Source: Adineta vaga (Eukaryota; Animalia; Rotifera). From it: a stretch of 64,000 nucleotides of DNA. Shown piece by piece: positions 53,426 through 61,225 of this stretch. The DNA is taken from NCBI GenBank assembly GCA_021613535.1, contig CP075493.1, positions 1,798,001 to 1,862,000 on the forward strand, written 5' to 3'. The position numbers and the translations under genes are program-made. Below the pieces are notes generated by a model. It did not search any database. It was not told where the DNA came from and saw only the letters and a list, made by a program, of their open reading frames with translations. Every line of letters starts with the position of its first letter. The stretch's first letter is position 1.

Positions 53426-55964
53426 ATGTCATTTGAAAGAATTAATCTTGTCTTAAAACAAATCTCATCATCGAATTCTTATTCATCTATTCAATCATTG
53501 ATTGAACAGTATTTTTTCGATAAAACTCTACAATTAACATCATTAGATCAAGAAAAATTAGTTCGATTATGTTTGAGAAAACTATCCGATTGGTTTTTAC
53601 AAAATCCCGAACAAATTAAAGAGATTAAAATCAAATTTCATCAACATCTTCTTCAAACACCTTTTCTCTTAAAACAAAAACAATTAATTGATTTAATTTT
53701 AAACGAAAATCAAACTAATCTAAATGATTATTTCATTTTTCTTCTCAACGATATCTACGAGAAAAATTATCAGAACTTATTAAATGAATTAGAGAATGAT
53801 AGTGATGTTGCCTATATAATTCATCTTCCGGATCGTATCGGTAATATTTCAATGACAAATATTCCACTTAGTTTTCAAACGAAAACTTATTTCAATCGAT
53901 TAAGTGATTATATTCAAGAACAATTAATTACATATCATTATCCGAAAATGGTAGCACAAATGGATACAAATGTTAGTTTCCTATGTCGACTTGTTCATAA
54001 AGCAGCGAAATTAGGTAATCATCAAATTGTTGTAGTTTAAGATCAAGTGTTTACTAACAAATTGATACAATCATCTATTTTAGGACATACGGAATACATT
54101 TGGCGTCGATTATACAAAAATTTATTTCTTAAAAAAAGTCCAAACGATTCACTTTGGTTACGATTAACACAATATTTTCTCTTAGAAACAATCGATGATG
54201 TACTTCTTTATACAATTCAACATGGTAATGCTCAAATTCTTGATTTAATTCTTAGTGATCGTATTCTTCATCATTCTGAATTACAAACATATCTTACTGA
54301 TACATTACTTTTTCGTAAACAACTCTCAATAAATCTTGTTCGAACTATTCTTATCTATTTAACCATGTCATCAAATCGATTAGAACAATGTTTCGAAAAA
54401 ACATTCGTTCGCTTTCTACAATTGTGGTCTCAAGAAAGTTTCATACGATTTTCATCCAATGAACAACATTTTTATATATGTCAATGCATTTGTATTTGTT
54501 TAGCTTTAAATCAACAAATTCATCTACAAGAAGATAAAGATCAAATTCTTTTATGTATATTAAATGGTATTCGAATTCATTTAGAATCAACATTTGATTA
54601 TATTCAACGACGTGGACAATTTCTTGGTGAATTAATTATTGAAAGAATCGATTTATTTTCCAAATCCAATCAACTTCAATTTAATACTTATGATAAAAAT
54701 CATCCAGAAATCGAAATTTTAAGAAAATTAGCTGAATTAAATCATTCATATAACGATAGAGAATTATCCGATGATGATGAACAACAAGAAATTCCAAAGA
54801 AAAAAGGTAAGAAATTTTCATTTTTCTATTCATTCAATTTCTTCTATCAACAAATTTTCGATCTTCATTTAGAAACTTCTATCATATCTACAGAAAAAGT
54901 CATCTCTTCTTCGAATACAGTTATTCTTCATGAAGTTTCCAACGATGAAGATGATGATAGTGAATTTGAATCCTATGATTATTCACATGATAAAGAGAAA
55001 TCTGAAGTAGCTAAACCAAGTTATATTCGATCATGTCTTGCTGATTTAATTGCAACAGATAAAGTTCCACAATTAGAAGGTGCTCTACAAATTCTACCAT
55101 CCTTAATCGAATTCAATAAGATTGAATGTGAAGAAGTGGCTTTAGAAATCTCACGAATTCTATTGAATTATAATAGTACATTTAATATTGAAAATTTTCA
55201 AGAATTACAATTGAATGGTTTAGTTACATTATGTAAAACCTATCCAATTTTAATCAGTGATTATCTATGTAGACAATTTTATGAAAGAAATTATACATTA
55301 AATCAACGAAGTTTAATTTTAAAGACAATTCAAGAAACTGCAAAACCGCTTATCAAGTATTGATCAAATTCGAACGAAAATTCATGAAGAATTATTTTCA
55401 TCTACCGATGATGATGATGATGAACAAGAATCATGGCGTTCAACGATTAACAAACGATTAAAATTGAAAACAAAATATAAAACAAAACTTCAGTCAAATC
55501 GTCAAGGAATTTTTCAAGAAAATTCTTTTGGAAATATTGTCGGACATTTCTTTTATCCATTAATATCATTGATCGATCAATCGACACCACATTTATCATT
55601 AATCAATGGTGATAATGATCATTTATTATTATGTGAACTTCTTGCATGTTTAGGTCGATTATGTATTCATGCACAAAATACAATTCCATTAAAAAATATG
55701 ATCAAACAATTCGTACAAGTTTTACATCTTTTACAACAACATCAAGATCCCGGTGTTCGACATGCAGTTATTTATGCATATGCATGTTGTTTAGTTTCAA
55801 TTGGAAATCAATGTTATGATGAAGATTTACAAGAGAAATTTATTGAATTGAAAGAATGGTTAGATCAAATGGTTATGAAAGATACAAATACAGAAGTACA
55901 GAAATTAGCAAGATCAGTTCGACAAATTTTATTAAAAACTTTACAAGATATGACGAGTAATTGA
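53426..55964 (+). CDS. TELO2: Telomere length regulation protein TEL2 homolog, with an apparent +1 frameshift at about 55346
   Basis: HLPDRIGN, LNGIRIHLES, acidic DDDSEFESYD..KPSYIRSCL, FYERNYTLNQR, ENSFGNIVGHFFYPL, HQDPGVRHAV, LKEWL..KDTNTEVQKLA. Confidence 0.85.
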
Positions 55965-56814
55965 AAGATTTTAGTTGATTTTCTTTTTCCGAAATAAAAT
56001 TTTCTCAAAAATTCATTACCAAGAAAGAAAAAGTATATTATTACAAATGTTTCGTTCTGATTTCATCTGAATCTAAGAAGAAGAAAAAACATGACAAATG
56101 TTTCTCTATCAATTATAAGTAAGTACTTAGTATTTCGAGTCCAACCCAGAAGGAAACAAAGCAATCAATTGTCATTAATTATTAAATAATCTTCAACGAA
56201 ACTATATTGTCGATCTTTCTGTCCTATTTAATTGGCAAATCATGATCTATGATGTAACAGACAGTTGTTTCTATTCTTCAAGGTTTAATTTTCAAGTAGA
56301 ATACAATTGTATTTGATCTAATCATGGTCTATACTTGAGTTGATTTGACATTGTTCAATGGAAATAAGATAAAAGAATAAAAAGAAAAATGACGAAGGAA
56401 GAAGAAAAAGAAAAGAGAAACATCATTGTACATTAATCTTCTAGTAGTAGTAGAAAGATTTCTTTTTCTTGATCTTTCTTTCTTGTCGGTTATTTCATTT
56501 AAGTAAATAAAAGAGAAGTCTTCAATTTAATGTTATCTCGATGAGAGGTTTCTAATTTCTTTTTCTTTGTATCTCTTGCAAAGGTATTAATCAAGAAATT
56601 AGTAAGTCCGAATAAATTGAGTAGGCGAGATAGACTTCTTATTAATTTCCTTTATTTCTCTGCCATGATTAGTAGTATATAACTGAAAGCTATATAAAGA
56701 GATGCATTTATCTCATGAATTCTTTAACATCTCGACTGAACAACATTTTGCTTCTTTATTTTAGCATCGAATTCAAACTCTTATTTTAATTTACAAACGG
56801 TAATATAATCAATC

Positions 56815-57295
56815 ATGTTGAAAATACAATTTATTCTTATGTTTATTTGCGCACAAATCTTCCTGATGAATTGTTTTACATTAAATCATATTCAAGTAAA
56901 TGTTTAATAATTCAATTATTGTATGTTGTATTGTTTGCTTTTTCTTTTTCGAATTTAGAGACCATTCTGGTCGGAATCTGATGGTGAAATCAATGATGAA
57001 CTTCTTTCGAAATTATTACGTACTGAAACGTTATTAAGTGAAGTTAATCCAGCAATTGGTTCATCAGCTGTTGGTCTTTTCGAACAAACCGATGGTCATC
57101 CACGTGGTTTACAAAAACGAGGACGACGTAACTAATCATTCGATGTATTTTCTTTTCTTGAAATTTCTTTTCGATTTAGAATGTCTATGGAAAGTATGTA
57201 GTTGGGCACTTGATAAACGTTCATTGCGCTCATCGGGTACATCATCGTCATCATCATCAAATTCAATCGATGCGTTGTCCAAACTTTTGTATTAG
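56815..57295 (+). CDS. Neuropeptide prepropeptide, urotensin-II-like (CLWKVC), 3 exons
   Basis: Exons 56815-56895, 56959-57127 and 57180-57295 join in frame: signal peptide MLKIQFILMFICAQIFLMNC.., an acidic spacer, then KR-GRQCLWKVCSWALD-KR. AATAAA follows the stop. Confidence 0.85.
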
Positions 57296-58544
57296 AAAAG
57301 ATCAAAAATAAATCTATTGTGAACTATTTCCTGTTGTTTTCTCTTTCTCTCTCTCTCTGATTCACTCGATCCATCTTACATTGATTCGTTCTATTGATCA
57401 ATTATCATATCAAATAAATAATAAGAAAAAATGAAACTAAAAATTTTCGTATTAAACAATGAGAAAATTATAGCAAGATTTTGTATTTATCGAATAGAAT
57501 GTTTAGAATATTCTAATCGAGATGATTTATATGATCTATACACGTCGTTTGCATATCCGGAAAAAAGTAATAATCCAGTATTAGTTTGGATGAAATACAA
57601 ATGTGACAATTAAAACAAAATATAATGTTTCTCGTGTATATTATCTGCTCATCAAATATTTATGACATTGTTATACAAACAAAGCTGACAGATGAAAAAT
57701 CCTTTTTGATTGTTGTTTGTATAGAAAATGAAGATTAGAATTTCATGTCTCTATCAAACAGTAATGCGTACTTTTTATCATCCATTTTAATGATTATTAG
57801 TAGCATGAAAAGATTTGAAATGTTTATCAAGAAGTACTGTGCTTTTGATTCATAGCAGCTTTTACACGACCTTGTTCATTTCTATCTAATTAGTCGTATG
57901 AATGATTATATAAAATCATGCGTTTATGAAGTAAAAAATTTCAACTGATTACTAGGGTTTTATCTTGACTGGATTCATTTGACTAAGTTGTTAATCGTTT
58001 AGAAATAGAAATGAATAATTCAAAATATAGGAAAATTCAGTGGAGTAACCAAGATTTGAAACGAATGAACAAACTTTGCTGGTGTTGAAAAACTTATTGG
58101 GCCAAATATTTTCTCGACCGCGGTCATGTTAACAATCATAAGAGAATAAGAAAAGGATAATTATACGATCGAACACTGATATTTTTGTTATTCTATCTTC
58201 TTCGATGAACATTTCACGAAGAAAAAAACGTCGGGAAAATACGTCTGTAATTCAGATCAAAGAAAAAGATGGGAAAGAATACAAAAATAGATAAAAAAAA
58301 CTCGGAAAGAGTTTAATTTCGATGAGCAATTACCAACTAGAGGAAAAGTAAGATTTCTGCACTTCGAGGTACTATGGAACTACAGAGGTCTCGATTCACT
58401 CCTCCTGGATATGTCGTTGAGAAGATTCATCTCGATGAAACTTGTTTATTAAAAAACTATTCAATGTATTTCACAAAATTTATTTTCAGTAAAAGAAGCA
58501 AAAGATAACAAAACGAACGAAAAGAAATTCTTCGATTAATACAT

Positions 58545-60018: not shown

Positions 60019-61225
60019 CTAGAGGTCGCTTAAATCAATGTGATTTACTATATGATTATAAATAAGAATCAGACAAAAATTAGAATAATTAGTTCGAAGA
60101 ATTGAATGATTTGTAATGAACAAACTTCTTTTTTGACAATAATTTCGACATTTTCCTTCAATGAACGACCATTGATGTTGACATTGTTGATAAATTCCAG
60201 TTATATTATTTATTTCATATCCTTTCCATTCTTTTGGTGTTTTACATCGTGCAAATGCTGATAAATCAATTGGAAATCGATAAAAATCACCGCGTTCATA
60301 AGCTTTTTCTAAATGTCGACGAAGTTCTATTCGTGTTATCCAATGATTCAAATAATTCTCGATATTTTCATTGTTATTTTTGATTAAAAGTCGATGGATA
60401 TCACCGTATTTGATATAAAACAAATTACATGGATTATCCATTAAGTAAAGTTGACGTAATGATGAAATATGATAATATGTACAAATATCTAACGAATGAA
60501 TATTTGAACTAACAAGATCAATTTCAACTAAAGATTTAACACCACAAAATGTTTGTTTTAATGGTAAAGAAGTATTTTCATTTCGAAAATAATTTCCTCG
60601 TAATTTTATTGATTTTAATTGTTGATTGAAAAGAAATAAAAATGACGGAAGATTTTCTAATTGAGTATTTTCAAGATCAAGATATTGAAGATTTTTCAAT
60701 GGTTTTAATAGATTATTTGTTAATGAACGTTGTCCTAATGGATTATTATTCAATAGAAGAATTTTTAAGTTTTTTAATATTAAAAATGCATTAGAATCAA
60801 TGATTGAAATTTGATTATCGGATAAATCAAGTGTTGTGATTTGATGACAATAAGTAAATATTCCATAGGAAAGATAAGTTATGCGATTTTGACGTAAAAT
60901 TAATGTATCTAAATGTTTTAATCCAAGAAAATCTTGAATAAAAAGTTCACGAAGATGATTTGGCTTAGATCAAGTGTACGTAATTGTTCAAGACTACGTA
61001 AAAAAGAATTTTCACTTAGAGATTCAAATTGATTATTTTGTAAATTGAGATTGAAGAGAGTTTTACTAAAAGATTTGAAAGTATGTGGCGAAAGAATAAT
61101 TGTATGAGTTGAATTTGGATAATTTACAAATGTATCTGATTTAATTGTTTCAATACTAACATTATGTAAATCAATTGTTTGATTATTTGGTATAAAAGAT
61201 GAATAGAACTTATCAAATATTGTGA
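60019..61225 (-). pseudogene. Leucine-rich-repeat protein with a frameshift at about 60960 and a shortened LRRCT cap
   Basis: LxxLxLxxN repeats (LRTLDLSQ/NHLREL, LDTLILRQNRITYL, LQYLDLENTQL). One A is missing in agc-caa-atc relative to an intact repeat. The 5' end is approximate. Confidence 0.6.

Follow-up and report, generated by a model that had tools for sequence, protein, structure and literature searches.

The window (the whole stretch of 64,000 nucleotides of Adineta vaga DNA that was analysed) carries on its forward strand a small gene with three coding exons, located between positions 56815 and 57295; all features given below lie on this strand unless stated otherwise. The coding part of exon 1 (56815..56895) translates into 27 residues, in which one lysine is followed by a hydrophobic N-terminus resembling a signal peptide. 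It is separated by intron 1 (56896..56958; 63 nt, GT..AG, phase 0) from exon 2 (56959..57127), whose 56 codons plus one nucleotide encode an acidic pro-region ending in QKRGR and then provide the first base of a Gln codon. Intron 2 (57128..57179; 52 nt, GT..AG, phase 1) splits this CAA codon, and the coding part of exon 3 (57180..57295) supplies the rest of it, the cysteine ring CLWKVC (57182-57199), the residues SWALD, a KR pair and a post-peptide of 24 residues. In translation, exon 3 reads CLWKVCSWALDKR, followed by the Ser-rich 24-residue tail and the TAG stop codon (57293-57295). The exons thus translate as proposed in the preliminary description, which had been made from the sequence by itself and had reported a three-exon gene with a signal peptide, an acidic pro-region and a KR-flanked CLWKVC.

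The computed charge of the pro-region is nine D+E versus four K+R in 51 residues. The only dibasic pairs in the A. vaga protein are two KR sites, at residues 80-81 and 96-97: the first (57115-57120) is in exon 2 and is followed by Gly-Arg, and the second (57215-57220) is in exon 3. The mature peptide predicted between these two sites would span 57121..57214 (57121-57127 plus 57180-57214, with intron 2 in between) and would be 14 residues long, or 12 residues long in a pyroGlu form starting at the Gln. As judged from hydropathy, the hydrophobic stretch covers approximately residues 4-21, after the single lysine, and is conserved; indeed, the 12-residue Kyte-Doolittle maximum at the N-terminus is 2.3-3.1 in ten relatives, with values of at most 1.5 elsewhere in each protein. 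A single C.WK.C match is found when the 64-kb window is translated in all six frames, where 200 shuffles give an expectation of 0.04.

The spliced product is identical, split Gln included, to a 121-residue protein deposited at NCBI as "hypothetical protein I4U23_000503 [Adineta vaga]" (P0001), exon 1 corresponding to residues 1-27 and the coding part of exon 3 to residues 84-121. The gene model is therefore already public, albeit without a functional name, and the gene, initially described as hidden, is not hidden from annotation.

Transcription was examined by comparing four sequencing runs over 56600-57500: X1, X4 and X5, which come from three different studies, and the DNA-type run X17. The first three were taken as RNA on the basis of the spliced and poly(A) forms themselves, the run label being a guess. 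In the contigs of all three, both introns are removed exactly at GT..AG. The first joint (56895>56959) is present in X1, X4 and X5, and the second (57127>57180) in X1 and X5; in X4 the latter is given as 57116>57180 plus ten intervening letters, which, once an A missing from the run of five A at 57113-57117 is allowed for, corresponds to the same junction. We take the missing A to be a homopolymer error in this 2013 data set. As an unspliced control, X17 gives one contig across the locus, with the introns retained and no joints. The X5 contig ends in 11 non-genomic A after position 57443, 25 nt past an AATAAA hexamer (57413-57418), which places the poly(A) addition site near 57443 and delimits a 3' untranslated region of 57296..57443. 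At the other end, the contigs start at 56763 (X4), 56776 (X5) and 56804 (X1), giving a 5' untranslated part of at least 56763..56814, the true start not being fixed by the contigs. A TATA-like box, TATATAAA, can be read from the sequence at 56692..56699, approximately 64 nt upstream of 56763, the most 5' contig start, and may function as such. The window gene is thus transcribed, loses two GT..AG introns by splicing, receives a poly(A) tail and encodes a protein of 121 residues. The spliced transcript that the preliminary description had named as a test therefore exists, in contigs from three studies, and its placing of an intron within the Gln codon just before the ring is confirmed by the spliced contigs (intron 2, phase 1).

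An exon-by-exon search of the A. vaga genome (100.8 Mb, six contigs) revealed one other locus, on the minus strand of contig C4, with matches over C4:12810062-12810310; the copy as a whole occupies C4:12810062-12810400 (equivalent to L002 1387-1789). This second copy also has three exons and is annotated as I4U23_021240 (P0016), a protein of 92 residues. Its introns occupy the same positions as those of the window copy: the first is of phase 0 and 64 nt long, and the second, of phase 1 and 60 nt long, again lies within the Gln codon. The 21-residue core GLQKRGRQ-CLWKVC-SWALDKR is identical in the two copies (21/21), and the five nucleotide differences found in it, when codons are compared across the split Gln (last 22 nt of exon 2 plus first 41 nt of exon 3), are all synonymous. 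By contrast, only 16 of the 27 residues of the signal exon are identical and only 17 residues are shared by the pro-regions (49 residues in the window copy, 41 in the C4 copy), while the tail after the second KR comprises 24 residues in the window copy versus three in the C4 copy. A frozen core within an otherwise divergent protein is the pattern expected of a prohormone strongly constrained only at its mature peptide and cleavage sites, and the comparison of the two sequences shows purifying selection focused on the core.

The two copies lie in related surroundings. At C4:12800731-12801420, 9 kb away from the C4 copy, lies a homologue of the downstream neighbour (60022-60753, minus strand) of the window gene. 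The two neighbours are 59% identical and the arrangement is mirrored, which indicates that the window and C4 loci are ohnologous blocks and not the result of a recent duplication. In a maximum-likelihood tree, the C4 copy groups with short-tail Rotaria paralogues with moderate support (84/99), which places the duplication before the Adineta-Rotaria split. Note that the same downstream neighbour also has an 86% identical tandem relative at C1:1863987-1864688 (minus strand), some 6 kb further on, just past the end of the window. For the large exon located upstream of the gene (54047-55360, plus strand), a search of the A. vaga genome at E <= 1e-5 detected no second copy, and the ohnologous exon seems to have disappeared.

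Profile searches retrieved relatives from Adineta steineri, Rotaria sordida, R. magnacalcarata, R. sp. Silwood1, R. sp. Silwood2 and Didymodactylos carnosus, together with metagenome and assembly proteins. In alignments of the retrieved proteins, CLWKVC is invariant in more than 20 relatives, and KRGRQ-CLWKVC-SWALD-KR is unchanged in every relative that includes the core, the exception being P0027, a read-through model with ALE in place of ALD. Both KR sites are invariant in the bdelloid relatives. Conservation of the ring and of the KR sites in related species, on which the initial proposal depended, is thus observed in A. steineri, in the four Rotaria species and in Didymodactylos. When aligned over the precursor, P0006 of R. 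sordida and the A. vaga product share 69% identity (65% by BLASTP). Two environmental sequences bear on the gene structure. In a 916-nt contig (L008), the three exons directly abut one another, as would be the case for a spliced mRNA of another bdelloid, and in a 17-kb genomic contig (L009) introns interrupt the gene at the two positions seen in the window gene.

More distant matches (P0029-P0033) keep K-R-G-R-Q-C-L-W-K-I-C-[S/N]-W. A gene of this kind, with KRGRQ-CLWKIC-NW, is found at L005:1939-2313, on an 8-kb genomic contig from a JGI metagenome; it has the phase 0 intron only, the pro-region and the ring being in one exon, and P0029, P0030, P0032 and P0033 are products similar to it. Six other entries (P0002, P0007, P0008, P0009, P0018 and P0027) are erroneous predictions that continue through intron 2 (57128-57179). 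Indeed, this intron is open in the frame of exon 3, so that several public gene calls made on genomic or metagenomic contigs run through it and yield chimeras in which the N-terminal part contains translated intron or is out of frame. Word-based protein searches returned bdelloid and metagenome or assembly sequences only, with no named mollusc or annelid precursor among them.

That the locus holds no gene at all, but three chance ORF fragments stitched together by eye, is a reading to which we give practically no credence. The individual ORFs are short, but this is all that could be said for it, and no support is left after testing: it is refuted by exact GT..AG splicing in three studies and by the poly(A) tail, as well as by the identical annotated product and by conservation in at least seven named bdelloid species and in two ohnologues whose cores differ by synonymous changes only.

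What this gene encodes can be approached by comparison with the SSRP-like peptides, which Koch et al. (2022, Mol Biol Evol; PMC9048919) characterize by a cysteine loop of four residues in which WK follows an aliphatic residue, by extensions on the N- and C-terminal sides and, usually, by one C-terminal Trp; these extensions "commonly" contain several Pro and a single Trp on the C-terminal side, and Gly/Ser on the N-terminal side. The canonical gene described by the same authors is interrupted twice, by a phase 0 and then by a phase 1 intron; of its three exons, the first carries the signal, the second encodes at its 3' end the beginning of the peptide, and the third contains the loop. The A. 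vaga peptide has a four-residue cysteine loop containing WK (CLWKVC), with Leu, one of the aliphatic residues of the family (I/V/L), before WK, and is flanked on both sides by basic sites (KR), as are SSRP-like peptides; the three-exon, phase 0/phase 1 structure is found in the window gene, in the C4 copy and in L009. Its extensions contain a single Trp (in SWALD) and no Pro, and consist of only G-R-Q on the N-terminal side. The locus is therefore very probably an A. vaga SSRP-like (Aplysia-urotensin-II-like) neuropeptide precursor gene, one of two ohnologous copies, this family assignment resting on a short motif and on gene structure, not on significant similarity to non-rotifer members. The preliminary description had likewise proposed a rotifer member of the protostome urotensin-II-like family, and sequence, splicing, conservation, gene structure and a ring identical to that of Aplysia apUII all speak for it.

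Its further suggestion that the family was being extended to rotifers for the first time has to be withdrawn, since Koch et al. (PMC9048919) already list SSRP-like sequences from Rotaria sordida and Brachionus angularis; A. vaga is not named in the main text of that paper. The R. sordida sequence listed there may correspond to P0006 or P0013, the R. sordida proteins found here. No new question is opened in this respect, rotifers having been placed in the SSRP-like family by the same authors. A 2024 preprint on rotifer neuropeptides, which used arthropod-derived models, does not cover the SSRP-like family.

The motif could in principle have arisen independently: the gene would then encode a cyclic peptide that is secreted and processed by convertases but is not neuronal in its role (a glandular, defensive or developmental signal, for example), and CLWKVC would be convergent with, and not homologous to, the SSRP-like ring. 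In favour of this reading, the peptide is short and has extensions on both sides of the ring that are unlike those of mollusc and annelid members. Statistical similarity to non-rotifer members is not demonstrable either: a Pfam scan of each exon and of the 85-residue ORF gave no family at E <= 10, Urotensin_II and Somatostatin included, the Pfam profiles being too short or too vertebrate-centred to help. Convergence nevertheless seems unlikely, as the number, position and phase of both introns and the placement of the peptide match the canonical SSRP-like gene, the ring is identical to that of Aplysia, and in the CLANS analysis of Koch et al. (PMC9048919) the rotifer precursors fall together with those of the lophotrochozoan SSRP-like peptides and of chordate UII/URP.

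Still less probable, by a wide measure, is an allatostatin-C-type precursor, allatostatin-C being the second protostome peptide that has a disulfide ring and is related to somatostatin signalling. In both families the precursor is small and has its disulfide loop towards the C-terminus, and a phase 0 intron lies in the pro-region. According to Koch et al. (PMC9048919), however, protostome allatostatin-C loops always have six residues and lack WK, and this identity is contradicted by the four-residue, WK-containing loop of the A. vaga peptide. A vertebrate-type urotensin II or somatostatin was rejected as well: there is no Pfam match at E <= 10, and the ring is CLWKVC, not CFWKYC or one with an FWKT core. 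Like vertebrate urotensin II/URP and somatostatin, the rotifer peptide has a six-residue disulfide ring with Trp-Lys at its centre, and its precursor is small and carries the ring at the C-terminal end, but the vertebrate urotensin II ring has aromatic residues before and after WK. The introns differ too, UII/URP genes having further phase 1 introns and SS genes the phase 0 intron only (PMC9048919), whereas the A. vaga gene combines phase 0 and phase 1.

Within the SSRP-like family, to which we thus assign the A. vaga gene, the predicted peptide is unusually compact, with at most three residues before the ring, five after it and no prolines. Where other protostome members have six to eight Gly/Ser-rich residues before the ring, it has Gly-Arg-Gln, or pyroGlu alone; its C-terminal extension has five residues without proline, in contrast to the Pro-rich extensions of molluscs and annelids; and its precursor differs from those of protostome SSRP-like peptides by the conserved 24-residue post-peptide ending in ...SKLLY. 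To our knowledge, apUII of Aplysia californica is the only protostome SSRP-like member for which mass-spectrometric and physiological data exist. The comparisons with Aplysia and Capitella made here rest on the peptide sequences printed in the respective papers (PMC3493602 and PMC9048919). Like apUII and apUII', the A. vaga peptide has the ring CLWKVC and a Trp in the C-terminal tail; apUII' is longer, with 20 residues (versus 12-14 in the rotifer peptide), of which six form the N-terminal part and eight a Pro/Ala-rich tail (PMC3493602). Romanova et al. (2012; PMC3493602) characterized apUII' by tandem mass spectrometry. The Aplysia peptide is disulfide-bonded and released by convertases, and it inhibits feeding motor programmes. 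Ct-SSRPL1 of Capitella teleta has a WK ring of the same size and was synthesized with an N-terminal pyroGlu, as proposed for the rotifer peptide, but its ring is CIWKVC (Ile instead of Leu) and it has a long N-terminal part and a PPTPW tail (PMC9048919). Finally, cone snail consomatins, which also contain C.WK.C and whose genes are built in the same way, derive from the SSRP-like gene family as well (PMC9048919). They are, however, venom-gland toxins under diversifying selection, whereas the rotifer core is under strong purifying selection, and nothing suggests a use in venom.

We infer the processing, secretion, neuronal expression and receptor of the A. vaga peptide largely by analogy with the family. 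The precursor would enter the endoplasmic reticulum by means of its N-terminal signal, the signal peptide being removed there, as in other members of the family. Prohormone convertases would then cut at the two KR sites. A second cut, after Gly-Arg, may expose the Gln, which would cyclize to pyroGlu. A Lys at P4 fits the rule for monobasic cleavage at Arg, and the invariant Gly-Arg after the first KR puts a Lys at precisely this position, making the second cut and the pyroGlu form, with 12 residues, plausible. A carboxypeptidase would trim the C-terminal KR, and the peptide is not expected to be amidated, since no Gly precedes this KR. A disulfide bond between Cys85 and Cys90 would close the ring and present Trp-Lys. 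With the disulfide bond in place, the computed monoisotopic mass of the 14-mer is 1661.78 Da ([M+2H]2+ 831.90) and that of the pyroGlu 12-mer 1431.63 Da ([M+H]+ 1432.64); for the linear 24-residue post-peptide it is 2446.22 Da. As regards the enzymes, the A. vaga genome contains at least nine matches to the P_proprotein domain, and PCSK1, PCSK2 and furin-type genes have been reported for A. vaga (10.1101/802215).

Once secreted, the peptide would have a GPCR of the rhodopsin type as its target, from the somatostatin/urotensin/opioid/MCH-related group, by analogy with Capitella, whose peptide activates Ct-SSTL1. The earlier statement that the receptor is unknown holds for rotifers but not for the family, since Ct-SSTL1 has been deorphanized, with an EC50 of 13.1 nM (PMC9048919). 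The effect is probably inhibitory or modulatory, for instance on feeding, if Aplysia apUII is taken as a guide. Given the small nervous system and the chromosome-level genome of this tractable rotifer, and given that a peptide of 12-14 residues is easily synthesized, pairing with a receptor and a behavioural test are feasible, with feeding, ciliary beating and desiccation entry as readouts in view.

The assignment provides a functional name for two A. vaga "hypothetical proteins" (I4U23_000503 and I4U23_021240). Moreover, bdelloid genes keep the phase 0/phase 1 structure of the mollusc and annelid SSRP-like genes, and this kept structure supports the published view that a somatostatin/urotensin-type system, separate from allatostatin-C, is ancestral to Spiralia.

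The post-peptide (57221-57292) is itself conserved among long-tail orthologues, with the pattern S-L-R ... N-S-[IV]-D-A-L-S-K-L-L-Y. Its last residues are ...SKLLY or ...SKLFY in the Adineta and Rotaria proteins, and ...LKVLY in that of Didymodactylos. The short-tail paralogue lacks most of the post-peptide, which may serve in sorting or be released as a second peptide. One may speculate, and we consider this rather doubtful, that rotifers use a minimal SSRP-like peptide, with pyroGlu abutting the ring and a five-residue Trp-containing tail, and that the long-tail paralogue additionally releases a second signalling peptide (...NS[IV]DALSKLLY). The block K-R-G-R-Q-C-L-W-K is frozen in both of the ancient bdelloid ohnologues and in the distant metagenome relatives, which lack intron 2. 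If this proposal were true, the long-tail paralogue would be a two-hormone precursor, which has not been described for the SSRP-like family.

Part of the post-peptide is variable: its poly-Ser run differs in length between alleles and between species. Likewise, the differences between sequencing runs are confined to the pro-region and the tail, none being found in 57104-57222. Those that change the protein are two substitutions in the pro-region (Ala>Pro and Ile>Met) and one in the tail (Thr>Pro), the tail also having one Ser codon fewer. The differences, at 57024-57063 and 57239-57274, form two haplotype-like sets, one shared by X4 and X17 and the other by X1 and X5, and neither set extends into the peptide core.
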